DNA of 64,000 nt from NCBI GenBank assembly GCA_020891255.1, contig BQFW01000007.1:1922001-1986000 (forward strand), read 5' to 3'. Below, in pieces: positions 1-28,700 of this stretch. Source of the DNA: Entomortierella parvispora E1425 (lineage: Eukaryota > Fungi > Mortierellomycota). The stretch's first letter is position 1; every line of letters begins with the position of its first letter. Position numbers and translations under genes: made by a program. Under the pieces are notes generated by a model that searched no databases, was not told the DNA's origin, and saw nothing but the letters and a program-made list of their open reading frames with translations.

Positions 1-1400
1 AGGGCATCCGCGAACGTCTGAGTCGAAGTAAACAATTTCTCATAGGCATGGACCTGTTTATCAAACTGCTGTTGCCTCTCCTCTGACAGTTCACCTCGAG
101 CAAACAAAGAAGATTCGTTCTTGCGTTCCTGCTTTTTCTTTTCCTGTATCAAGAAAAAAAGGGACCCACTGTCAGTGCTGCGGTTGATTCTCCATTTTGT
201 TTCTATTATCCGCAGTTGCTCAAAAGTACCTTATGATCGCGAACGAGATGCGGCTCCAAACTTTTGTAGTATTCCAAGAACATGGACTTGAACAGCTGCT
301 GTTGTACCGGAGAGACATTGGATTCTGTTGATGCTGCCTCTTCTCCAGTTGCAGGCTTGCTGTCTGCCTCTTTGCCTTCTGGGGTCACTTTTGCCTTTCG
401 TGGGGTGATACCAGTCAAGTCCTTGCTATGAATCTTCAGAACTGTCAACAGAATTGGCAAGTTGACATGCTCCTTGTCCCCTGCAAGCTATTCCATTAAA
501 AACGAAGATCGTGATGAGTGCCCTGTTTTCCATCGATCAATCCGTGGGAACACACCACAGCAGCCATAACTTTGCCTCTTTGCCATACCAAATCATGTAG
601 GATAACATAAACAAAGTTGGGAGATGCTTTGGAGCTGTCTCCGGCATTTCTGGGATCCTTGCTACCATTGACAAGTAAAGCGGCGACACTGTCCTTGGCC
701 GCCTGTCCACTCTTGCTCGAGACGCCTGCCGACCCTTCCGCACTCAGGGTGGCGACGCCATCCTCTGCATTCCGTAGGACCCTGGCGAGCCAGAGATCTG
801 TCGCGACACGACAAAGGTTGCGTTGACGAGAAATCCTGGAAGCCTCTTCCTTCTCGCGTTGCTCTGGTGTCGATCCGGCTTGAGCCAGTTGCTGGTGAGT
901 CAATTTGGGCGAAGGGGCCAAGGCTTTGGCCAGGTGGTAGGTGAAGAGGAGGGTGAACGTGTCGGGGAAGCGCTGATGCAATGCTGAAATGACGTCCACA
1001 GCGGCGGCGACATCGACCGCCCGACTGCATCGCAGGAGACCTTCGAGGATGGCAGCCACGATCTCGGAGATGTACTTTTCCAAGCTGAGCTTCTTGATGT
1101 CGTTGAGCAACTGAGGCGCGACATCGGCGGTGAGGCCAGCCTTGCACTTTTTGATGAAGGCCGTGTTCTTTTTGATGTTGGAATCAAGGTTCTTGAGGGC
1201 AGAGGGATCTATGAGGGACATGGATGGAAACAATGCGAGATTTAGCAACCACGACCTGGGCGTGTCATTGGCCATGGCATGGAACGCAATGCTGTCTAAT
1301 GCGATTCAATGCGATTCAATGCGATTCAATGCGAATCCTGACCTGGCTTGGTCAGCCATGCCGCCAAATTGGCCTGTCGAAGGTCTTGTCGGTTCGCCAC
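1..1400 (-). CDS. UPF2: Nonsense-mediated decay factor Upf2/Nmd2, 5' part (MIF4G-1); gene continues past the left edge; true start uncertain
   Basis: ORF 496..1275 contains LDSNIKKNTAFIKKCK...LSLEKYISEIVAAILEGL...ALHQRF, the Upf2 MIF4G-1 signature. Downstream exons give LEYYKSLEPHLVRDHK and LFARGELSEERQQQF, matching Upf2. A GT-AG intron at 1342..1209 joins an upstream exon (VANRQDLRQANLAAWLTKP) in frame to DPSALKNLDS. Confidence 0.93.
1298..1334. repeat. 10-bp tandem repeat (GCGATTCAAT)x3 plus partial copy, inside UPF2 intron 1
   Basis: Exact copies at 1301-1310, 1311-1320 and 1321-1330. Confidence 0.95.
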
Positions 1401-1509
1401 GATTGCAGATTGGAGGATGGAGGAAAGGGAGTGTCCGATTGGTCAGGAGAAATGGAGTAGAAGGAAAGAGGGCGATGGGGGGTTAGCAAAAGAGGAGCAG
1501 GCGATCAAA

Positions 1510-2177: not shown

Positions 2178-5100
2178 ATGGTCAGTATCAACGCAAAGTG
2201 CTAAGAAAAAGAAGGAAAAACTCGCTGTTGAAGCTCACCGCAGTCTCTGCAAATGGTTTGCTTCCTCATAGAAGAGCACGCATCGTCGCCCGCAGCCAAA
2301 GAACGCGGCTCTCGTGCCCTCTTACGCACCGACATTTGTGCCCATGCCCAAGCAAGAGCCGGAAGGACTGCGGCCAAACCATGGTATGCGGCCTCGGAGC
2401 AAATCCACAACGACGCGCCAAGGACGCTCTCCACTTCCAGCTGACTGAACGGACTCTCCTCCCCTTTTTTAGGCGTCAAAGTGAAGTACGATCTCCAGAC
2501 TGCCACCATGATGCTGGAAGAGATAGAAGATGCTTTGGATAGGACAGCGGATAGCACCGGTCTGGTTCAGACCTTGGACCAGCTCCTGGTCTTGTCAGGA
2601 CAGCAGCCTATAGCATGGGAACCTAAATTCAGGGTAAACTACCAGGACCTGCGACCACATGCCTGGCCCGACAGTAGAATTTTATCCGCTTGCTAACTCG
2701 ATGACTTCCACTTTTTTAAGGGCATTATTGACTTGCTTGTTGGATGGCATGTTGACCTCGGAACAAATGCAGCAGTGAGGAAGCGTATCAGTGGTAGGCT
2801 CCACCTTTCCTTTTCTTCCCTTGACAACCGCTGCTCTATGCCTCAACTCGAAACCTTACAGATCGACTCGTTCTGGATGCAATAGATGTTCTCTCCTCCT
2901 TTTCGATGCAGTGGACGAGCGCCGCAGACTTTGGTCAAGATCTTTTAGAATTTTTCATCAACGATATCGACTGTATCATTGCGGACTCTGCTACAGCTAC
3001 TGGAGCTCCTTCATCGATGGAGACTGCGGTTTTGCTCATGAGGTACTTTTTGAGTTTCTTAACCTCTGTGAAAAGTCTGGGAGAGAATTTAGGCAGTTGC
3101 TTTTACGGAGAAAAGCATTGTCGCTTACTGTATACATTTTCTTTTATCACAGCTGTTTCAACATCATTGCCAAAGCACTCATTGGTCATGCCTACATGTC
3201 CCTTGACCGCCTTGCCGCTATTCAGGAGAGAACAGTCGGAGTGATTGCAAGAATGGACACCTCCTACAAACCCTGCATAGCCGCCGGTATGAAAAAAGAG
3301 CATCAAATAACGACAAATCCGTTGCTCTCTCATTTCTGACCCTTGGACTTATTTCTAGGCAACGATATCATCTTGACCCTGAGCCAAGGGGATGCGTCCT
3401 CGTTTTATACCCTGCAGCCTAAATCGCTGCATTTTATCATCAAGCAGCTCAACCCTCAGGCGGACAGGGCAACATGGCGAGGCATGGTCAAATACACTAA
3501 AAAGGTTGGCTCTAGCAACGGTTCTGTAGCTTCGCCTTATATATCTACAAGTATTCTAACAATATCTCGTGCGAAAATAGATTCTTGGATACTGGCGACC
3601 GCACATCCACCATGAGGTCATGCACGAACTATTGCATGCAAAGAGTAGATTGATGCAAAGTCGTTGGCGTGTGTCAGGAAACGCGGATCGGGCCCAGGAT
3701 GTACTCGACATTATTCTTTTGGCGCTACCTGCTACACCCCCAGATGAACCGGACATACCGCCCATTGATAAATCTGGCCCACTTGGCGCTGCATGGATCA
3801 GTATCATGGATGAGCTCGAGCAGATCCTTCAACGCCTCTCCGCCAGCAACTTTCTGTCAAATCGGGAAGATTTCAGATCTGCCCTTCAAAACTCAAAACT
3901 GTTACACACAGATGTGCCGTTATCGAAATATGAAAAGCAGGATGTGATTGAACATTCGACAGACAGAGACCTCGTTGTCAATCTCACTATTGATACCATG
4001 CTTCTTGTGGAGATTTCAAAACACACGGAAATCACTTTCACTATGCTTGTGCGCCTATTGGAGCAGCTTTTGGTCGTACCCGAGGAACGTCTGACAGTTG
4101 TCCTCTATGCCCTCAAGGAAATATCTGAAGGGTAAGTATTTCTGTTTGCTCTTCTCCACCTCGGACGAGTCAAGCATCTTTACTCAATTTTTTACTTTTT
4201 GCTTTTAGGCAAGATCATTACGCACCAGGACTGTTTGAGAGCAACCTTTCAGAACATTCGGACTCAATATCAACGACAGCTCTTGGCAAAATACATGGAT
4301 TCGTTCAGGCTCTTGTTTCTCAGTGGCGCTTATTACCAAGTGCTATGAAGATCTGTATTATTGCCTGGGATGCCAGTATAAAGACCACAATTCGTATATT
4401 CCGTCCTGTCGACAATGTGGCCAGAATGTGGAAGGCCCTTAAGAACTGGCACTCGTCATTTCTCCCCAGGCTGATCATCATAGCAGGTACCTTATTTTGG
4501 CTTGTGCCGTAGCATGGTGTTGATGGATTGTGAGTTGTAATTGTTATATTTTTTTGTGGCGATGTAGGCATTGAAGAAGACGAACTTATTCGAAGGCATA
4601 TGGCGATCATGTTCGAGCAGTTCATTCTAACCTATGGATCTATGAGCATCGGTCCAGATCTCCTAGTGAGCATGATCGACAGGTACGTGGTTTTATCTAT
4701 CTCATACATAGACCGCCTATATCAACTTTGAAACTAAGCCCGAACTCCTCCCTTGATATGCAGATCAACAGATGTGTCGTCTCAAGTGGGTGACGCATGG
4801 AGTAAAGTTGTCTTCCAGTCGAATCCGTTCGAGTTTGCGTTCGACTGCTACAATCGCCATGACAAGGATGTACTACAGACGCTAAAAGTAAGAACTACTC
4901 TGCAGATCTTGAAAATAACTCTGACCCATCTGCCCATTAATGCTAACCACGCCTGGGGGATTCTTTTTAGCTTCTGGTACTGAAGACACCAAACTCGGGA
5001 ATATTTCGATACCCGCACTTTTCGATCGTTCTTTCCTCCATGACTCTCTCTGGCGATGAGTCGGTAAGGGGCAGTACCGTCAACTACAGGAATGGTGATA

Positions 5101-8100
5101 TGCTTCAACGACTGTTTCACGCTTGTCAAGGTAGGGAAACCTTGGCAAGGGTGAACGCGGATAGTAGCTCTGGTAAGCGAAGGATTTCCAACAATGCAAT
5201 GATTCGTGAAGTGATACTTCCCAGCACAATAACACCATTTGTTATACGCTGCTGTAGATACGGTGTCGAACGATCAACTAGCGGTCTTCCAACACTCTCA
5301 AAATTTGTTGCGATACTGGGCACTTTGGGAAACAGCTCGTTACTGTGTACTGTCGCGGTTGAGGACGCCATTTGGTGGACCTCAGCAGACTTTGGATGCT
5401 TTAGAGAAGCACTTGAATTCTCTCCTGCGGTCGGATCAAAAAAAGATGGACAGCGATGCAAGGTAAATCGAAGGGCATTGTATTTCCTGTACTGCACCGT
5501 TGTCGTCGGCGCCGCTGATTAACTTGGGCTGTTTCGATAGATTGAACCCCCTGCGAGACTTTTTGAACTTTTTGGATCGCCTTGAACTTCAGTTCTACAA
5601 TGCTGCTCAAGGAACAGCCTTGGGTGTAATTCCGTTGGCTCCAAAGCCTACTATTGTTTTTGCACGGTCTAACAAAAGGATGTGGGATGAATGGTTTGCC
5701 CGTGTGCGGAGACGCACGATTGAAGGTGCCAAAGCTACAGACGAGCACGAGCTAGTGATTCGTCATGGATATATGGTAAGGGGAGGAACCTATGGATCTG
5801 ACAGGTTCCCAGGCCAGAATCTAATGAAAAACTAAATTGTAGCTTCTGTCAGAGTTGTTTGACTCCCTCAGCCGGGGGGCTGTGAGTGACATCATTCCAT
5901 GGATCGATGATTTCGAGCTACTTCTGGTTGATCTGGGTAAGTGTCAATTCCACTGCCAGACCACATTCTGCATCTTTTCTCACACGTGCCGCTAACACAT
6001 CACCTTGGGTGTATTCTAGTCGAAGCTCTCATTGCCACCAATTCCGCAGATGCCATCACGGGGCTCCAAGTATGGTGTCGCCGTGCTATTAAGGACTTGA
6101 CTAAACAGACAGGTGGAAGATCGCGCCATTCGCGGTCTGATAAATCCTCGCAGCGTAAGTTCCCGTGCTCTAGCTGCTCCCAAGGTCAAAGACCAGCCAT
6201 ATGACTGACTGAGCTGTATCATGCTGAAAATGTAGATCTGAGGTTCAAAAATGCATGTCTGAACGAAGTGCAGGCCGCGGCACTCTCTCAGATTTCTTTA
6301 GACTGGATCGCCACAGCAGTTTCACGAGCGCAGGTACGTACGCAGGATTTTTTTTTTTTTTTTTTTTTTTTTTGAAATTTCGGACTACAGGACTTTTCAC
6401 TGACTTTTGCGTCGGTAATCGTTTTAGCATCGATATGAACAGTTTGCAAAGGATGCAGTCCCTCTTGTAGGGTCGTACTCAGAGGGTCAATCTGCCGATG
6501 ATATCACACCGCCTGAAGAATTTCTTTCGCGGCAGATCTCTGCTGGTCTCGGTGATTTGTGCAGCTACAAAGATCTCCAATCGTTCCTAGATTCAATACC
6601 CATTGATGTCCTCTCCGACCAGACCTACCCTTGGAGTGGAGATGCTATGAATCAAAGTCTACGACGGTACTGTGCAGAGGATTCGACTGAAGCTTGGAAA
6701 CACCTCGAGGACTACTACAGTGTGGAAAGCAAAGAGTTACATGAGCTGGAATTGACTCCTCTTGAACAAAGCGCAGTCCATGGAAGGAACTTTCTCTTTG
6801 CCTCCAAGATTTATCAGCAACACAGTGCCAGCACTCTGGACCTGGGTCATCTACGTCAGGAAGCGGCCGCGTTCGCGCGCAAATCGGCTGAATTTTCGTT
6901 TGGAAGTGGTCTGGGCCATGCAAATACAAAGTACATGGATATTATGATGCTCAATACGGCCGAGTCAACAATGCCTATGGCCATGAAGGAGCTTATGGAT
7001 CAACTCGCTCAAATTCCGGACGAGCTGAAGATGAATCTTTTAAACAAGGATCTGAGGAACTGGGTCCGACTCGATACCATGGTCAACCTCGCTAAAAAAC
7101 AAGTTGGAAAAGACGATACATGCTTTGTGAAACAAGCAAACGAGTTCAAATTCTTGCTCTCCAAGATTGCACGAAGGACAGACTGTCACAGCTTCGCGAG
7201 TGACATCCCAAGGACTTGGGAAGGCGCCCTGTCGCCCGAGATTCAGTTTGAGGAGGCCAAAGCGGCGATGGCAAAACACGACTATACAACAGCATTAGAG
7301 TCCTCCAGACGAATATTGGACAGGATGCAGCAAGGGACAGATATGCCAATACAGGCTTGCACGCCGGCAGTTCTACTGGAGAGCAAGATCTATCTAAAAC
7401 TGGCCAAGTGGTCCCGTTCTTCCAAACCTTCTTTCTCAGCAGATCATTTGGAGACATTTGAGAACATTATCGGCTTGGAGCATGACATGGCGGAACAACT
7501 TCCTGCGCGAATTGAGCGGATCACCTCCAGCTGCCTTCAAAAGGCGATCGAAATTGGATCTGACTACCGAAAGTCTTGGTTTGCATTTGGAACTCATCAT
7601 TACAAGCAAGGTTGGGGAATCTTGGATGAGCTTGGATCATTCCGATTCCATCACCCCGTAGCAACAGCTGCCAATGAAACTCTCAAGGGCATACTGGTCG
7701 CGGCGGGCATTGATCACCCAGCCGATCACTCCAAGGTATTTTTTTTTTTTTTTTGAGTGCAGCTACTCGGTAGAATGTTGGGGATACTTATTGTCTAATT
7801 CACTCTGAATGGATCTAGAACATCTTTTCTGTGTTCGTGAGGCATTGCGCTTCCGGTCAACCATTTGACGAGACGTCAGCGTACGAAAGTATTCGAGCCC
7901 ATCTGCTCAAGATTGAGGGACTGTCGGCAGCTGAGAATGTGATTTCAGAAATCATTGGTTCTTTCCAGACTCTGCTCTTGCGCATCTTGGAAACCTATCG
8001 ATTGGCTATTCGGGGTTACTTCAAGTTTCTTCAGTTTGCCTCTCTTGAATTTGATTGCAGGCAGCCTGGGTCAAAGGTACGCTTCCCACCAACACATTTT

Positions 8101-10777
8101 TGCGGCTTACAACACAAAAAACATTGACCCATTTTTTTTTTTTTGACTAATTAGAACGTGTTGGAAGAGGACGACTCAACACAGCAATCTCAGTCAGCAA
8201 TCACGGACGAAATTACAGCCACTCTGCGACTGCTTCGACTGCTGGCAAAACATGGCGCACAACTCTACGACGTGTTTAAAGAGAACCTAGTCGATATCAA
8301 TGTTCGACCTTGGGCGAACATCATTCCACAATTGTTTGCGCGTCTCGATCACCCAGAGCAGCCTGTACAGTCCTTGATTGCAGATCTACTCTGCAAGATT
8401 GGCGATCAAAGCCCTCAGCTGATTGTCTTTCATTGTGTGGTGGGCAGTAACTCTGCACACAACAGTCTGGTACAGCGAAAATTGCTCCGCCATATTGGCG
8501 AGGCCTTGACACGAACCCACCCCGAACTGGTGACACAGGTTCAACATTTGGTTCGAGAACTTGAAAGAGTCACAGTGCTGTGGGAGGAAATCTGGTTCAA
8601 AAAGATTATGTCGGGCGTTCCGGAACTCAAGGCTGCCCTTCAAGATCTGACTGAACAATACCAAGGTCTGGAGGTGATATCTGGACTGGGGCCGGAAGAG
8701 AAACACACGGTCATGTATGACAACTATCAACAGACTGTGATCCCACTCTTGGCGACATTTGAGAGCTTGCAGGATTCGAACGCAAGACCGGAATCGAACC
8801 ATGAACGGTGGTTTATTTCAGCTTTCAGGGATCGAATCCAGGATGCGTTGGAGAGCATGCGCTCCCCGAAATCTTGGAGCAATATGTATGAGGGTCTGGC
8901 GAAACTGAAAGAGGTAAATATTTTCTTTTTTCTTTTTCTTTTTAATATTTTGTTTTGCTGTTTGCCTCTACAAGAAACAAAACTAATGACCGCCAATACA
9001 CTAGATCCACAGCGATCTTGGAAAGGAAGTGATGGGGTCGCGCGTGCTCCAACTCGCAGACCTGAGTCCTGAACTGGCGTCGTTGCAGTCGTCTCTCATT
9101 GAAGTCCCCAACCAATCTACAGGAGTGACCATTCAGTCTTTTGATCAACAAGTTGTTGTGATCCCGACAAAAACCAAGCCAAAGAAACTGAGTTTGATGG
9201 GCTCGGATGGAAAACGATATACGTATTTGTTCAAGGGACTGGAGGATCTTCACCTGGATGAACGTGTGATGCAATTGCTCCGGATCTCGAATGGCATGCT
9301 TGTTCGCGACAAGGAGTCCAATTCAAGACAGCTGAGCGCACGGCACTATGCGGTCGTTCCTCTGAGTGACAACTCGGGCATGATTCAGTGGGTCGAGAAC
9401 ACCGTATCTATCTTTACCATTATTGCAAAATGGCAACACCGAGAGTTGATGTGCAATCGTTGGATGAACGACGATACAGGGACTTCAGCAGGACCGCAAG
9501 TGCTCCAACGCGCCACGGAAGTATATAACGAGAAAGCAGCTGCGGCACTCAAGAAGGCCGGGCTGCCAACAAACCATCCTCGAAAGCTTTGGTCGAAGTC
9601 CATGCTTGTGGATCTTTACCAGGAGATGGCTAGCGAAACCCCGGCGGATCTGCTGGAACGTGAACTTTGGGCATCAAGTCCGACGTTGTCGGAATGGTGG
9701 CGCAAATCAGTTCGATTCTCACGGTCGACGGCCGTCATGTCGATGATTGGATATGTGATTGGGCTCGGCGACCGGCATTTGGATAATATCTTGATTGATT
9801 TCACGACAGGGGATATGGTCCACATTGATTACAACGTCTGCTTTGAGAAGGGTCGTCGACTTCGCATCCCCGAGATTGTGCCCTTCCGACTGACTCGTAA
9901 CATGCTGACAAGTCTGGGCGCGACGGGTGTTGAAGGCAACTTTAGGATCGCGTGCGAACAGACGATGAAGGTCATGCGAAAGAACAAGGAGATCTTGGTG
10001 ACGCTCCTGGAAGCCTTTGTGTACGATCCCCTTGTGGATTGGCAGGTGGATGTGAATGCTGCTCAAGGAGGAGCTGGAGCACCTGGAGCTCCCACTGGAG
10101 TTCATGGAGTGACAGCAGCCGACATGGGAAGCTTGGTATCGACTGGCCCAGGCGCCAACAGCAGCACTACCGACCTTGCGTCTTTGTTGTCTCGAGATGG
10201 ACTCCAGAGTTTGGCGGTAGACAGTGAAAGCGAGAGCGGCAGTGTGGTCTCGAGCTCGACCTATGCATCAAGAAATCGTCAGCGGGACTCGAAGGCATCC
10301 CTTGACAGTAATTCGGCCCGGTCCATGGGCCTTTGGCGGCGGCCCTCGACGGACAGTCTGGTGTCGGTCAGTAGTAGGAGTATCCAGTCAATTTCCACCA
10401 ATGCTACGACGGTAGAATCAAGCTCCAAGAGCATCACCGCCGGAGGCGGTCGCTGGAACACAGGCGCAGGCGATCCATTGGTGGATTCTTCAACGGGACA
10501 TTCAAATGGTGGCGATGGTGGTACGAGTACCATGTCCCTCCAGGCACACCCTCCTCCTCACCAACAGCAACCACAGCAACAACAACAGCCTCCGCTGCAT
10601 CAGAGAAACGCGTACGCGGTCAATATCCTGCGACGGGTACGACACAAGTTGGAGGGACGTGATTTTGATCCAGCCAAGAAGTGCAAAGTAGCGGAGCAGG
10701 TGGATCGGGTGATTCAGGAAGCGACGCAGGTGGAGAACCTGGCCAACATGTATGAAGGGTGGACTCCATGGTTGTAG
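2178..10777 (+). CDS. SMG1: SMG1 PIKK-family serine/threonine kinase (NMD, Upf1 kinase), about 20 exons
   Basis: Exons traced by eye give FRGIIDLLVGWHVD, WALWETARYCVLSRLRTPFGGPQQT, LDRLELQFYNAAQG, WANIIPQLFARL, VLWEEIW, kinase YLFKGLEDLHLDERVMQLL...GLGDRHLDN...HIDYNVCFEKG, and FATC QVDRVIQEATQVENLANMYEGWTPWL*. These fit SMG1 rather than TOR/ATR. Proposed start is ATG 2178-2180 followed directly by a GT-AG intron 2181..2271 (start less certain than identity). Last exon is 9005..10777. Confidence 0.95.
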
Positions 10778-21303: not shown

Positions 21304-23352
21304 TTAAGAAAGTCTAGCTTGATGTTCTGGGTAAAGAGCACGAAGGGCTTTCTCTAACCAGGCTACATACTCTGTCCCGGACTCGATGGACGGAGTAGCT
21401 TTGCCCACCATAACTTCTAAACTTGGGATCAACAAATGATCAGGCAAAGAGGACAAGAACCTTCGCTTCTGGGCCGGCTGCATCGTCGCCGTTGCTACCC
21501 CGACTGCCTGCACTGCTTCCACAGTTTGAACCAAGGTCGAGATGGGCTGGATGGAAGGGACCTCTCCGCGAGCGTCAGTGTCGTCCGCCAAAAATCTCTT
21601 TGTCATGCCCGCAAAGCTGTAATCGATCTTGAGGAAGGAAGGAATATCATTTTGAGTGTACGCAACTGTGGTACCGTATCCGACTCCAGGGGCATTCCCA
21701 ATATAGACCAAGATGCTAGACGTCATGGTCAAATTGACAGTAGCACCAGTCAGGAGCCCCAGATTCTTGGGTAGGAACTGCGTTACCAGAAACAGAGCAA
21801 ACTCGTAACCCTGTGGAAATTGCAGCGCCAGTTGGGGTGAGACGACGGCTGCACCTGTGTTGATGGCAAAGGGGATATGAGCATGGTCAACCCCTCCAAA
21901 ATAATTGCCCTCCCAATACGCCGAAGCCGTCATTGTGTCAATCCAGAGAACGGTTGCTAGCGGGTTCGCGATTGTGACCGTGAAAGGGATGGCACGCGGT
22001 CCCAAGATATTCCCGAGGCTGGGGTTTCCGTTGCCGTTCGTGATTAATCGGGGCCGTGGAGTCATCCCGGGAATGGTGGTGTTCATGGTCAAGGTCTCCA
22101 GGGTTGGGATCATGGATGCCACCTGGCTGGTTTGCGCGTCACCATAGATGGAGCTTTGGATATCCCCCTCTGCCATGAACTTCGATATGAACGCGTCTCT
22201 AAAGGTCGGGTCCTTGGGTGAAAGTCTGATCGAGGCCGGGATTGTATTCAGACCTGGCTTCAGGATCAGGTCCGTCACGGTCACAGATCCCACATAGCCA
22301 TATGTCCCATTGACAGTGCTGTCGACCTGAAGAACAATATAACCCATGTTGACGGAAAAGATGGAGGGGTTCTGCAGCCCTATATTGGCCGTGATGATAA
22401 TCGCCTCCGTAGTCCCGTTAGTGACGAGGATGTCTGTCACAGTCGGCTTTGCGTTGGAGAAATTGATTCCCTGCAGGGGCAATGTCGCTTGGAGAGGAAC
22501 CATCAAATGGACGGTTCCCAGAGATGTGACAGCGACGCCCTGAACAGATCCCGTCACGTTCACGGTTGCGGAAGTCTGCTGGGTGACAGAGGTCATGAAA
22601 TCCGTAAAGGCCAGTTGGTTGTAGATATTCATGGGCGAGACTGGCACGGTAAAGACGACCTTATTATTGCTCATATCAGAGGCCGTTGTGTTCCACACCG
22701 CAGTCGAGATCTGGCTAAAATCGTTGCCCTGGTAGGCCAGCTTGAAGGTGGCGTTGGCCAGTTCTGTGATGTTGATCGAGATGTTGAAAGGGATCTTGAA
22801 GTCGGCAGAGACCGAATTGGAGTTGACCGTGGGTTGCCAGGGGTTATCCACGCTGAAACCCAGGTCCATGTCATTAATTTTGATGTTTTTGACCACTTCC
22901 ATGGGCTGGACGGGCTTCAATGGGACCGTCAAGGTGGTGGCAACAATAGCATTCGTGAGCCATGATACAGCATTCACACCGTCTGGCAGGACCGAAACTC
23001 CTTTTCCTGAAGCCAGCGTTGGAATGTTGGCCAGATAGTTGGAGATGAGCTCAGACAACTCTGCAACATGAACTGGATCGGTCTGCTTGAGCAATTGACC
23101 CTCGAGATTAAGCAGCATGGGCTGGCCTCCAACCAGAACCACATCCTTGGCAAAAACGCGGCCGAGGTATGCCGTCTTGTAAGACATGTCGAAGGTGATG
23201 GTACCAAGCGTCATACCGATCGGTGAAGGGTTGGGGATGGAAGCACTGATCGTCACCAAGGCGCCATTGCCATCCGGTGCATCCGCTGGGAGGTCAAAGC
23301 CAAGAATCTGCACGTTTGCAAAGTTATTCAGACCTGTCCCAAGTGAGTGTTG

Positions 23353-23386
<34 letters not shown>

Positions 23387-24527
23387 GTTAGATACGGGAC
23401 TCGGCTCGTGAATGAACATAACAGAATTAGAGTCTGTACCATGCATGACCAGGTTCTTGTTGATGGATAGATTCTTGATAGTCTGACCCAGCGCCTTGAT
23501 GGTCGCTTTACTGTTCAATGTCCAGGTGAAACCATCGGCCGACAACTATCGTTTTTTAAGGACAAATTGATTAGCGTCGCCCTTGCATGCGCGCTTTCAT
23601 TTTTTTTCCTCCGGCCCTTGTAGACAATAGGTCCCCCATCAGAGGATGGTCTTTACCCATCCATACGGATAGAATCACGATGTCCCCAGTCGAGGATAAT
23701 TGGGTCATTCATGCATAGACGGCAGCAATCGGAGTCATTTTTTGAGTGGGGTTGGCTAGAAACCCCTCCGAGGACGTTAATAGGATTTTGTGGGGCAATT
23801 CGCTCCTTTAGGCAGGCTCGATGTGGAGAAAGAACTCTGTCGATCACGACCCCTCCACAGATGCATGAATGGCCCGCCCCACACCCCCTGTTCACCCTCT
23901 CCTCCACTCAACTGTATCTATCAAGGCCTAACCTACCATGACTTTGGCAAAGTCTCCAAAGGCGGTCGTATTCTTGATCTGGAACTGGGTCGTTTGCACG
24001 ATATCACCCTTTCCCTTTGAGACCTTGACTTCTCCCAGGGTCATGGATCCAATCAATTCGTTCTCCCAAGAGATATCGACTTCTTGCGTAAATTCCAACG
24101 AGGCCGAAAGCAAACTTGGGATCCCTCCCACCGTCGCTAGCACGGAAACTGCCATGGCCATCTCACCCGGCTGGGTCATGTTCAATTGGACCACAGACAT
24201 GGAGGCGTTGTTCATCATCAATTGCGCCACTTTGGGGATAATGACCACGATCAGGAGCGGGATAAAAATGGCCAAAAAGATCACCGTGCCAACTCCACAG
24301 CCGATGAGGACTTTCTTCTGGCGCCAGATAGGTTTTCGATAGGGCTTGTGGTTCGAAAGATAGGCGTACTCCTCAAAAACAAACTCATCATCAGGAGGGT
24401 TGCCCGTTGCATCTTGGTATTCAATTTCCTTTTCGTTATACGGTAGGTCTTGACTGTACTGTGAGGAGGTGGAGGAAGGGGAGGGGGAGGGGGCGAGTTT
24501 TTCGCGCAGAGGGTCGGGACGTGGCAT
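21304..24527 (-). CDS. DUF3712/Tag1-like type II membrane protein, copy A (3 exons)
   Basis: Cytosolic N-terminus, basic stretch and one TM (KPIWRQKKVLIGCGVGTVIFLAIFIPLLIVVIIPKVAQ), then repeated beta-rich LEA_2-like units (ISASIPNPSPIGMTLGTITF; LQNPSIFSVNMGYIVL; IANPLATVLWI) with many NxS/T sequons. Confidence 0.8.
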
Positions 24528-25711: not shown

Positions 25712-28700
25712 CTACCTAAATCCTCGTGCTGCCTCGGCTTCTTCTGGGAAAGTCAAGTCGACTGCCTTTTGCAACCAAGCGAGATATTCTGGGCCATTGG
25801 CCTTGTGCGGCTCTGGTCCCAACAGAAGATCTTCCTGAGAGTCCAGCGTCTCATTTTCTGCCTCCATGAGTATATGATCCACGCTGCGTTTCTTCAGACC
25901 AACGCCAAGGCCCGTGAGACTAAACTCAATCTTCAAGAAGACGCCCACATTGTCCTGGCCATACTTGATCCCGGCCGGATACCCTGCTCCGACATTGCCG
26001 CCCACCGTCGCCTGGATATCCGCCTCCAGGTCCACATAGACCATCGCACCCGTCAACACCCCCAAGTTTTGAGGCAAGAACGACGTGATCATGAACGTCC
26101 AGAACTGATACGAACTTGGAATTTGAATAGCCAGGTACGGGGTCGAGCTCACCACACTGGCCGCCAACGAAAACTGTTGGTCAATACTGATGTCCCCAAA
26201 TGGAAAGCCCTTCCAAGACACATTGGCTGAAAACTTTTGAACCCAGAGCACAGTCGCCAAGGGGTTCTGGATCTGGACCTGGAGCATGATCTGGTGGTCC
26301 GTCATGAATTGACCCACCGTCGTGTTGCCATTGCCCCCCACCACCATCCTGGCGGGCGGGTTCATGCCAGGCACTGTCGACACCATCTTGAGCGATTCCA
26401 TGATGGGTGCGAGCGAGACGATTGAACTGGACGTGTCATCGCCATAGATGGTCGCTGCGAAATCCGTTCCGACAATGTACTGAGTGAAAAACGCGTCCCG
26501 GAAGGTCGAATTCGAAGGAAAGAATCGAACTTGGGCGCTGAGAGGGTTGGGACCGGGGACTAGTTTCAAGTCTGATATCAAGACATCGCCCATGTTTTCC
26601 GTTTGGCCATCAATCGTGCATTGAATGTGCAATGTTGCTGGTCCAGCCTCGACCGCAAAGATGGAAGGGTTGTCGATCATGACTGTAGCATTGATGGTGA
26701 CGTAATTAACATTGCCATCCACGACCACGATGTTGCCCAGTGTCGGTCTCATGGCCTTAAAGTTGATCCCCGGGAGACTTAGTGAGGTGTTGAATGGGAC
26801 CGTGATATTGACCTGACCCAGGGACGTCACTGCTGTGCTCTGTGCGCTTCCTAGAATCCCAAAAGTGGCGGTCACCTGCTGAGCAACAGCAATCAAAAAC
26901 TCGCCAAACATGTCATGGGCATTGGCGCGGATGGGTAGAGGTGAGGTGGGCAAGGTGAAAGAGATGTTGTTGTGGGCCATGTCAGAGTTGGTCCTGTTCC
27001 AGACGGCAGTAGTGATGTCAGCTAATGGCACATTCTCGTAGGCCAGAGTCAAAATCGTGTTGTCGAGCTCCGTGATGTTCATCGAAATGTTGAATGGCAA
27101 CTGAAAGACTGCGGCGATAGAGGATGAGGAAGCCGTGGGTGTCCAGGGTTGATCGGGCGTCATGACCAAGTTCAGGTTTGCGATATCAATCTCTTTGATA
27201 AAGTTCAAGGGCGTAGGAGGCAAAAGAGGGATCGACATCTTTGTCGAGACAATCGCCGCCGTCATCCACGAGACTGCATGGACGCCATCGGGGAGGACAG
27301 AAACTCCCTGTCCGTAGGCTGTGCTGGGAATATTGGCGAGATAGTTTGAAATCATACTAGACAACTCCTGCAAGGACTCTGGAGTGGTTTGTCGAAGGAT
27401 TGTCCCCTCGAGATCCAAAATAGTGGGCTGGCCTCCGATCAGGGTTGCGTTCTTGGCAACAATACGACCGAGGTAAGCTGTCTTGAGATACATGTCGATG
27501 GTCAGAGTCCCTAGGGACATGCCAATGGGTGATGGGTTGGGGATAGAGACCTGGATGGAGGCCAAGGCGCCTGTCCCGTCTGGAGCATCTGATGGGATAT
27601 TGAATGCGAGAATCTTCAAATCTGCAAAGTTGTTCAAGCCTAAAAAGTCATGATAGCGGGTTAAGAGAGGGGGAAGAAGCAAGGCCAGACAAAGCAAGCA
27701 GGAAATGAAAGAACAAGGGTATTGAAATGGATTGCGTGCACGTACCATCGAGATTTAGCGACTTGTCCAAACTCAGGCCCTTGATTTTCCGGCCAATGAC
27801 CGTTACATCGATGTCAGCGGTGATTCTCCAGAGAAAGCTCTCCGAGGCCATCTATGGGGAAAATCAAGAGTTTTTTTTGCAAGTGTAACCAAATGAGCAA
27901 TCTCTCCCTCTCTGTGTTTCGTTCTTCTTCATTAGCCCCAAAGTGAAATGAATGACCGTTGGAATGGGGAAACAAAGTGTCGGGTAGAGAGCCAGAGTAC
28001 AAGAGAGAAATAGTTGCTGCAGAGAGTCCATCACTTATGAATCGTGGGTTTTTTTCCCATCGAGATCGCTGATTGTTGGAGCAGTCTTCTTACCATGACT
28101 TTGGCAAACTCTCCAAAGAGGGTTGGGTCCTCAATCTGAAAGGTCGTTTGCTGGGTGAACTCGGCCTTGGCAAAGGCCTTCTTTATGATTGTGCCCAACT
28201 GCATTGTGCCCACCTGTGGCTCTGAGGTCCCTGATTGAACCCAAAAGACCTTGACCGGTGCTTGGAACTCGACCGTTGCAGAAAAGATCGAGGGGATGCC
28301 CACAATAGCTGCATCAACCGAGACCTCGATACTCTGTTCTTGAGGATTGGTCATGTTCATTTGTAAAATCTGCATCGTGCTCGAATTCATCACGAGCTGG
28401 GCCACTTTGGGGATGATCACAATCAACAGCAAAGGAATGAAGGCTGCAAGAAAGACGATGGTCGAAAGAACACAGATCCCCCAGAACTTTTTACGCTTGT
28501 AAAACGGTTTTGGGTAAGGGCGCTTGGCCGTCTCGTATTCATGTTCGTACTCCTCAAAGGAATCACTCTGGTCATCCTGGATAAAGAAGATATCGAGAGA
28601 GTTCCCTGATTTCTCGTCGTTGGTTTTGGATTTTGAAGATTGCTCATGAGATTGATTCGATTGCTTTTTTTTCTCGGAAAGATCGCTGAAGGCGGAGGAT

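Follow-up and report, generated by a model that had tools for sequence, protein, structure and literature searches.

From which codon is a protein made when the exon that encodes its amino terminus holds no ATG? The question is raised by a 64,000-nucleotide (nt) stretch of DNA from the fungus Entomortierella parvispora E1425 (GenBank assembly GCA_020891255.1, contig BQFW01000007.1, positions 1,922,001 to 1,986,000 of the forward strand), hereafter called the window and numbered from its own first letter. Its minus strand carries the 5′ part of UPF2/NMD2, the gene of a core factor of nonsense-mediated mRNA decay (NMD), which runs off the window at base 1. An earlier note on this DNA had proposed that UPF2 starts at a GUG codon and that an out-of-frame AUG soon after it leads ribosomes into a short dead-end frame, so that the mRNA becomes a substrate of NMD. 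The comparison of this locus with its relatives indicates that translation of UPF2 most likely begins at a weak non-AUG codon, apparently across the whole of the Mortierellaceae; the connection with NMD is a tentative proposal.

We identified the gene as UPF2 by the presence of both an N-terminal MIF4G domain and the conserved LDSxIKKNTAFIKK block. Exon 2 (1208-589, minus strand; 206 complete codons, none of them for methionine) matches the Pfam MIF4G domain (1.7e-9), is 58-95% identical to fragments named at their source as regulator of nonsense transcripts 2, and is 74% identical to a full-length UPF2 of 1240 amino acids; the best full-length protein matches, all from Mortierellaceae, support the placement in this family. 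Exon 2 opens in frame with D-PSALKNLDS and is joined to a short coding exon 1 (1400-1343; 19 codons and one base, phase 1) by an intron of 134 nt (1342-1209; GTCAGG...TAG, phase 1; donor CCAG|GTCAGG, acceptor cctcatAG|AT), whose position and phase are kept in 11 of the 11 loci examined, Mucorales-like ones included. Exon 1 encodes (V/M)ANRQDLRQANLAAWLTKP, the N-terminal helix of the first MIF4G (MIF4G-1) module, and it supplies ahead of MIF4G-1 the R-x-x-L-R-x-x-N-x-x-A-W pattern, which aligns in 11 relatives. The minus-strand frame that enters this exon consists of a TGA (1445-1443), PIGHSLSSILQSAI, V and ANRQDLRQANLAAWLTKP, and is free of ATG. The in-frame TGA lies 15 codons 5′ of a GTG at 1400-1398 (context gcaatcGTGg, with A at -3 and G at +4), and the 14 codons between them are all non-Met; on re-reading, the earlier note proved correct in all its coordinates for the ATG-free exon and its bounding stop, and equally in the GTG and its context. 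The first in-frame ATG of the conserved frame (283-281) is reached only at about codon 295, in exon 3, past most of MIF4G-1. By homology, intron 2 ends with the TAG at 490-488 and exon 3 begins at 487, not after the CAG at 483-481; the boundary is based on the alignment with the protein of Actinomortierella wolfii (HDL-LSH-DKEH against HDL-LAG-DKEH). Intron 1 holds a 10-nt unit repeated 3.7 times (1298-1334), which is not conserved as a repeat in the close relative L001.

Eight Mortierellaceae loci, the window and seven others, were compared at the level of DNA; they represent about five lineages, and further Mortierellaceae were seen through gene models alone. L001 is a close relative of the window, with exon 2 identical at 95% of its amino acids, L003 and L004 are Podila-like, L005 is Linnemannia-like, L007 and L028 are metagenome contigs, and L033 is A. 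wolfii (GCA_016098105.1). Four Mucorales-like loci (L029-L032) and one from Calcarisporiella (L002) served as outgroups. A metagenome scan gave only two useful extra loci, the informative L007 and L006, which is without exon 1. Farther downstream in the gene, the C-terminal, UPF1-binding Upf2 domain (PF04050) was found in the syntenic loci L001, L003, L004 and L033.

Alignment of these orthologues at the proposed start codon, which the earlier note had suggested as a check, gave a near-cognate NUG in all eight Mortierellaceae loci: GTG in six (the window, L001, L003, L004, L007 and L028) and CTG in two (L005 and A. wolfii), in every case with A at -3 and G at +4. The GTG of the window aligns with Met-1 of the Mucorales-like proteins, and the four outgroups with an ATG start have that ATG at the aligned position, preceded at -3 by T, T, G and A. 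In the gene models that read through this point, the residue here is V or L and follows a K, T, N or I codon; in those of Mortierella alpina, M. claussenii, Dissophora ornata and Modicella it is V, after K or T. Since all such codons begin with A, the A at -3 is seen or implied in 12 of 12 taxa (eight DNA loci and four gene-model species). Coding-type conservation starts exactly at the GTG/CTG codon. Upstream of it, the lineages either cannot be aligned or are set apart by indels that break the frame; downstream, codons 2-5 show only synonymous or conservative changes (Arg as CGA or AGA, Gln as CAA or CAG), all four third bases are used across the loci at Ala codon 2 (GCG, GCA, GCT and GCC), and over codons 2-19 the proportion of synonymous differences between lineages (pS) is 0.5-0.8 versus 0.11-0.25 for nonsynonymous ones (pN), a pN/pS of about 0.2-0.4.

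Each of the six loci whose sequence reaches far enough 5′ (the window, L001, L003, L004, L028 and L033) has a stop in frame ahead of this codon, with no ATG between the two. In the window and in L001, moreover, the DNA immediately upstream is free of AG for 301 and 189 nt, respectively, and hence holds no canonical acceptor by which an upstream coding exon could be grafted before the codon. The helix that follows is contained in the MIF4G-1 constructs of which crystal structures exist for yeast Nmd2 (4LUN) and human UPF2 (4CEM), and the A. wolfii orthologue aligns to both from the helix onward; as part of these solved constructs, the helix is expected to be translated. The proteins of the relatives also bore out the rule given in the earlier note, by which Upf2 of fungi has its start a few residues ahead of this helix. 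The recurrence of the same layout in seven other independently assembled loci places it beyond chance or an assembly slip. The invariable GTG or CTG, its fixed context, its alignment with the Mucorales ATG and the onset of protein-level constraint at this very codon thus argue together for initiation there, a conclusion drawn from comparative sequence data that we consider probable.

The candidate 5′ leader (1507-1401) is pyrimidine-rich (C+T 77% over the last 108 nt) and contains neither an ATG in any frame nor an AG; its conservation with L001 is limited to the last ~21 nt. Several observations about this region weigh against a non-AUG start. Shuffling revealed that the lack of ATG in the leader and the AG-free zone are both in large part an effect of composition, the former being non-significant (P ~0.28) and the latter only mildly significant (P ~0.01). 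Outside the window and L001, the other lineages have an AG 7-19 nt 5′ of the start codon, and therefore an upstream exon is possible there from the sequence alone. If transcription starts upstream of ~1625, the leader would carry up to five AUGs. Finally, no conserved hairpin by which use of the GUG might be enhanced was found 3′ of it: the pairs in the consensus fold are all weak, invariant and non-covarying, and none lies near +14.

The other part of the earlier note concerned the first AUG after the GUG. Its claims about position held: the ATG at 1359-1357 (ggcggcATGg) is out of frame, 41 nt downstream, formed by the Ala-Trp codons GCA|TGG, and its frame, when read across the 1342>1209 splice, is closed after 13 codons by a TGA at 1186-1184. 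This AUG is present, as GCA-TGG, in all eight of the non-AUG loci; in each of them the last base of the codon before the GCA is a purine, so that the AUG has a purine at -3 and a G at +4. Across these loci, GCA makes up only 16% of the Ala codons within the first 66 codons of exon 2. The frame that the AUG opens extends for 33, 17, 6, 24, 6, 6 and 10 codons in the relatives, its stop is made at the splice junction in three loci, and it ends far upstream of the main stop and of the later introns.

On the scanning model, and with what is known of near-cognate efficiencies, this arrangement would have the following consequences. In this fungus, and apparently throughout the family, UPF2 would have lost its AUG start, and a GUG (in two other lineages a CUG) would serve instead at the ancestral position and in the best possible context. 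A scanning 43S complex with its initiator Met-tRNA would recognise the GUG at 1400-1398 in a minority of passes, and the protein so made would start M-A-N-R-Q-D-L-R. Most ribosomes would leak past the GUG to the AUG at 1359, which would be the first in the mRNA and combines a strong context with the wrong frame; from it they would make a dead-end peptide of only 13 codons (6-33 in the relatives). The early stop, ahead of the later introns and ~3.5 kb before the normal one, would lower the output of UPF2 and expose its mRNA to NMD, with a feedback loop on an NMD factor as the result. Early out-of-frame termination after leaky scanning is an NMD-triggering configuration in yeast. That leaky scanning couples UPF2 to NMD and so closes an autoregulatory loop is, on these grounds, a possibility that we put forward only tentatively.

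The most serious rival to this last step accepts the GUG start and takes the out-of-frame AUG to be an incidental by-product of Ala-Trp coding; UPF2 would then be translated at a low level without any selected NMD feedback. A number of facts speak for such an origin and against a selected role. The AUG is partly forced by the Ala-Trp pair, as TGG fixes three of the four bases; it also occurs in one of the four outgroups with an ATG start (L029); the length of its frame, 6-33 codons, is at chance expectation, and its stop is not conserved. The probability that GCA was retained by chance may, given the approximately five lineages and the incomplete saturation of synonymous sites, lie anywhere from ~1e-4 to 0.06. 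What an incidental origin explains less readily is the presence of GCA in all eight loci despite its minor share of the local Ala codons, the invariable purine that places the AUG in a strong context, and the use of GCT or GCG at this Ala in the other three ATG-start outgroups. The retention of GCA hints at selection for the AUG. We give the incidental origin only slightly less than an even chance of being correct.

The remaining rivals dispute the GUG itself and would provide UPF2 with an AUG from elsewhere. One of them invokes a micro-exon, ATG-CCA-T (1694-1688), with a GT donor at 1687 and the AAG at 1387-1385 as its acceptor, so that GTG-GCG-AAC-CGA-CAA would be intronic and the product would read M-P-Y-L-R-Q-A-N-L-A-A-W. 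The join is in frame both in the window (ATG CCA T|GTGACA) and in L001 (ATG CCA G|GTGCAT), the intervening 313 nt are AG-free on the UPF2 strand, a branch-like GCTAAC is present at ~1487, and the GenBank predictors picked a 7-nt first exon in A. wolfii. The first exon of yeast NMD2 likewise has only a few coding bases, a point that our literature search did not confirm. However, the codons 2-5 that would be removed as intron are conserved across the lineages as codons, with four-fold turnover at the Ala and synonymous change at the Arg and Gln. The AG at 1386-1385 arises incidentally from Gln-Asp/Glu coding, and its place differs by one base in three loci (L005, L007 and a further one); L001 has lost the GCTAAC by deletion; AAG is the poorest type of acceptor, and neither of the two donors (GTGACA, GTGCAT) is conserved; L003 has no equivalent in-frame ATG with a donor; and the two A. 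wolfii models contradict each other. An upstream exon spliced to the AAG at 1385, one of the alternatives that the earlier note had listed, is disfavoured by the codon conservation 5′ of the AG, the shifts of this AG and the loss of the GCTAAC from L001, and we consider it improbable.

A further rival leaves the helix exon untranslated and places the start at the ATG at 1275 (by way of a retained intron or an internal promoter), at the ATG at 1359 joined to an alternative acceptor at 1256, or at the ATG at 283. The ATG at 1275 is in frame with exon 2 and no stop intervenes (open reading frame (ORF) 496..1275), L003 and L004 likewise carry in-frame intronic ATGs, and many GenBank models use downstream or intronic starts. 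Against this, in-frame intronic ATGs are missing from L001, L005, L007 and L028, and L005 and L007 have a stop just ahead of the intron 1 acceptor. The ATG at 1275 in a retained intron, as contemplated in the earlier note, was rejected because only the window, L003 and L004 have such an ATG, and its other suggestion, the ATG at 1359 with the 1256 acceptor, because the acceptor segment is deleted in L001. A start at 283 would remove most of MIF4G-1. Exon 1, furthermore, is under protein-level purifying selection, and its helix is part of a conserved and crystallised module. An untranslated helix exon is accordingly very hard to credit in any of its three forms. As for intron retention in the relatives, intron 1 of L004 (1871-1984) is 114 nt long, in frame and stop-free, and its retention would add 38 residues without any truncation; the intronic frame that is continuous with exon 2 is stop-free in L003 (112 nt) and L028 (85 nt) as well, where retention would break the frame, as these lengths are not multiples of three.

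The idea that the GTG is an ATG misread in sequencing or assembly, or that the gene is a decaying pseudogene, draws on the prior rarity of non-AUG starts and has no other support; its probability is negligible, as the error is refuted by the same class of codon in eight independent assemblies or metagenome contigs, and the gene is intact, with a low pN/pS and with MIF4G and Upf2 domains downstream in L001, L003, L004 and L033.

If UPF2 indeed starts at a GUG or CUG, this should have left its mark on the deposited annotations. We collected about 30 GenBank models of Mortierellaceae UPF2 (P0033, P0169, P0173-P0199 and P0235) in a region-restricted search with the A. wolfii protein; the genera include Actinomortierella, Mortierella, Linnemannia, Podila, Dissophora, Haplosporangium, Gamsiella, Gryganskiella, Modicella and Entomortierella. 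The N-termini of these models are mutually unrelated. Some have first exons of 7 nt, the A. wolfii prediction among them; some have ad hoc exons; some have extensions of 20-40 residues that are dissimilar to one another; some start within intron 1, as does the Podila minutissima model, to which the translation of the L004 intron is an exact match; and some skip the helix exon entirely. Even on the same DNA, the UPF2 models of two A. wolfii strains differ. The models from Glomeromycotina, Mucorales and Umbelopsis, by comparison, all start with Met a few residues ahead of the helix. Such discordance is the pattern to be expected where predictors that demand an ATG meet a gene that has none. The ~30 deposited models probably have wrong N-termini, and many of them lack the first MIF4G-1 helix.

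The surroundings of the gene add a second NMD factor to the picture. SMG1 lies divergently from UPF2 on the plus strand (2200-10777); PI3_PI4_kinase and FATC domains are present in its ORF at 9029-10774, for which SMG1 structures give the best PDB matches (3.5e-132, versus 1.8e-73 for mTOR). The head-to-head arrangement of UPF2 and SMG1 is kept in L001 (1-3700) and in A. wolfii L033 (1-866). In the Mucorales-like L029 and L032 the upstream neighbour of UPF2 is an adaptor-complex mu subunit, and a tblastx comparison of the upstream regions of L003 and L004 with the SMG1 side of the window gave no match. Between the two genes, 5′ of the candidate leader and ~110 nt from the GTG, is a (CTT)28 microsatellite (1591-1508; a perfect (AAG)28 on the plus strand), the counterpart of which in L001 is CT-rich and not conserved as a repeat; it could possibly act as a CT-box-like promoter. 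A common motif, ATGTGAC(A/G), occurs 130-290 nt 5′ of the start codon in several lineages (1681-1697 on the minus strand of the window, ~3610-3630 in L001, ~45-60 in L028 and ~-130 in L003 and L004, where it reads GTGACGTGG), and could be either a bZIP/CRE-like promoter element or a minimal start-stop upstream ORF (uORF; ATG-TGA). Farther away on the minus strand of the window, two adjacent long ORFs (21307-23442 and 25715-27748), each with DUF3712 (Tag1-like) domains, are apparently tandem paralogues.

An extended form of the NMD reading can be drawn from this. The dosage of UPF2 would be wired both to the fidelity of start-codon selection and to NMD itself, with every UPF2 mRNA a built-in NMD substrate: the mRNA would be stabilised as NMD capacity falls, and the synthesis of UPF2 would rise whenever near-cognate initiation relaxes, for example through the eIF1/eIF5 balance or under stress. 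The head-to-head SMG1 may share the promoter, and the two genes would then form a compact, self-tuning NMD module. We regard this extended scheme as rather unlikely.

A non-AUG start of UPF2 would have an interest of its own. Few cellular genes rely wholly on a non-AUG start, and each conserved case is a handle on the control of protein dosage by initiation stringency. In the present case the gene belongs to the core of mRNA surveillance, and a dead-end frame is opened by the first AUG beyond its proposed weak start. Since the GUG, its context and the GCA-TGG AUG are confined to one small mutable block, the tuning of NMD capacity by leaky scanning is open to direct experiment. There is also a practical side: many of the deposited Mortierellaceae UPF2 models have lost the first MIF4G-1 helix or carry other sequence in its place.

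One point of reference is UPF2 in the sister lineages. In Mucorales, Umbelopsis and Glomeromycotina, UPF2/Nmd2 likewise has the N-terminal helix, the phase-1 intron after it and the MIF4G-1 sequence; it differs in starting with an AUG, at or a few codons from the position of the Mortierellaceae GUG/CUG and in an unremarkable context, and in having an upstream neighbour other than SMG1. Among genes with an exclusive near-cognate start, the obvious parallel is vertebrate EIF4G2/DAP5/NAT1, which is GUG-started and itself encodes a MIF4G-domain protein. Mortierellaceae UPF2 resembles such genes in its apparent lack of an AUG alternative, in that a conserved NUG with a purine at -3 and a G at +4 heads the conserved frame, and in that its expression is presumed to be low and regulatable. 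It is unlike them in encoding a core NMD factor, in switching between GUG and CUG within a single family, and in that its next AUG is both out of frame and only 41 nt away.

Non-AUG initiation in fungi was surveyed by Ivanov et al. (2017; PMC5487733); the cases described are mostly N-terminal extensions 5′ of a usable AUG, and neither UPF genes nor NMD are mentioned. Our literature search found no paper that pairs UPF2 or Mortierella with non-AUG initiation, nor one that describes the NMD-autoregulatory reading of UPF2 considered here. A fungal analogue is eIF1 of Cryptococcus (Wallace et al. 2020; PMC7049704): ribosomes that leak past its weak annotated start initiate at a strong-context AUG soon after, which lies in a different frame, and a link with NMD sensitivity was suggested. 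Mortierellaceae UPF2 would share the combination of a weak start with a strong out-of-frame AUG downstream. The weak start of eIF1, however, is an AUG in poor context with ribosome-profiling support, whereas that of UPF2 is a candidate non-AUG codon proposed from sequence comparison; and the eIF1 feedback operates via the role of eIF1 in start-codon stringency, whereas a UPF2 feedback would act via mRNA decay.

Negative feedback of NMD on the mRNAs of its own factors has been described in human, zebrafish and C. elegans (Longman et al. 2013; PMC3783168), and in plants UPF3 is under such control (Degtiar et al. 2015; PMC4417159). In human cells with impaired NMD, it is UPF2 mRNA, among others, that goes up (PMC3783168). 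The features through which this feedback is known to act are long 3′ untranslated regions (3′UTRs), uORFs and introns in the 3′UTR, and obligatory leaky scanning past a non-AUG start to an out-of-frame AUG inside the gene is not among them. Mortierellaceae UPF2 would agree with these animal and plant systems if its out-of-frame AUG acted as an NMD-inducing feature: the activity of the pathway would then limit one of its own components.

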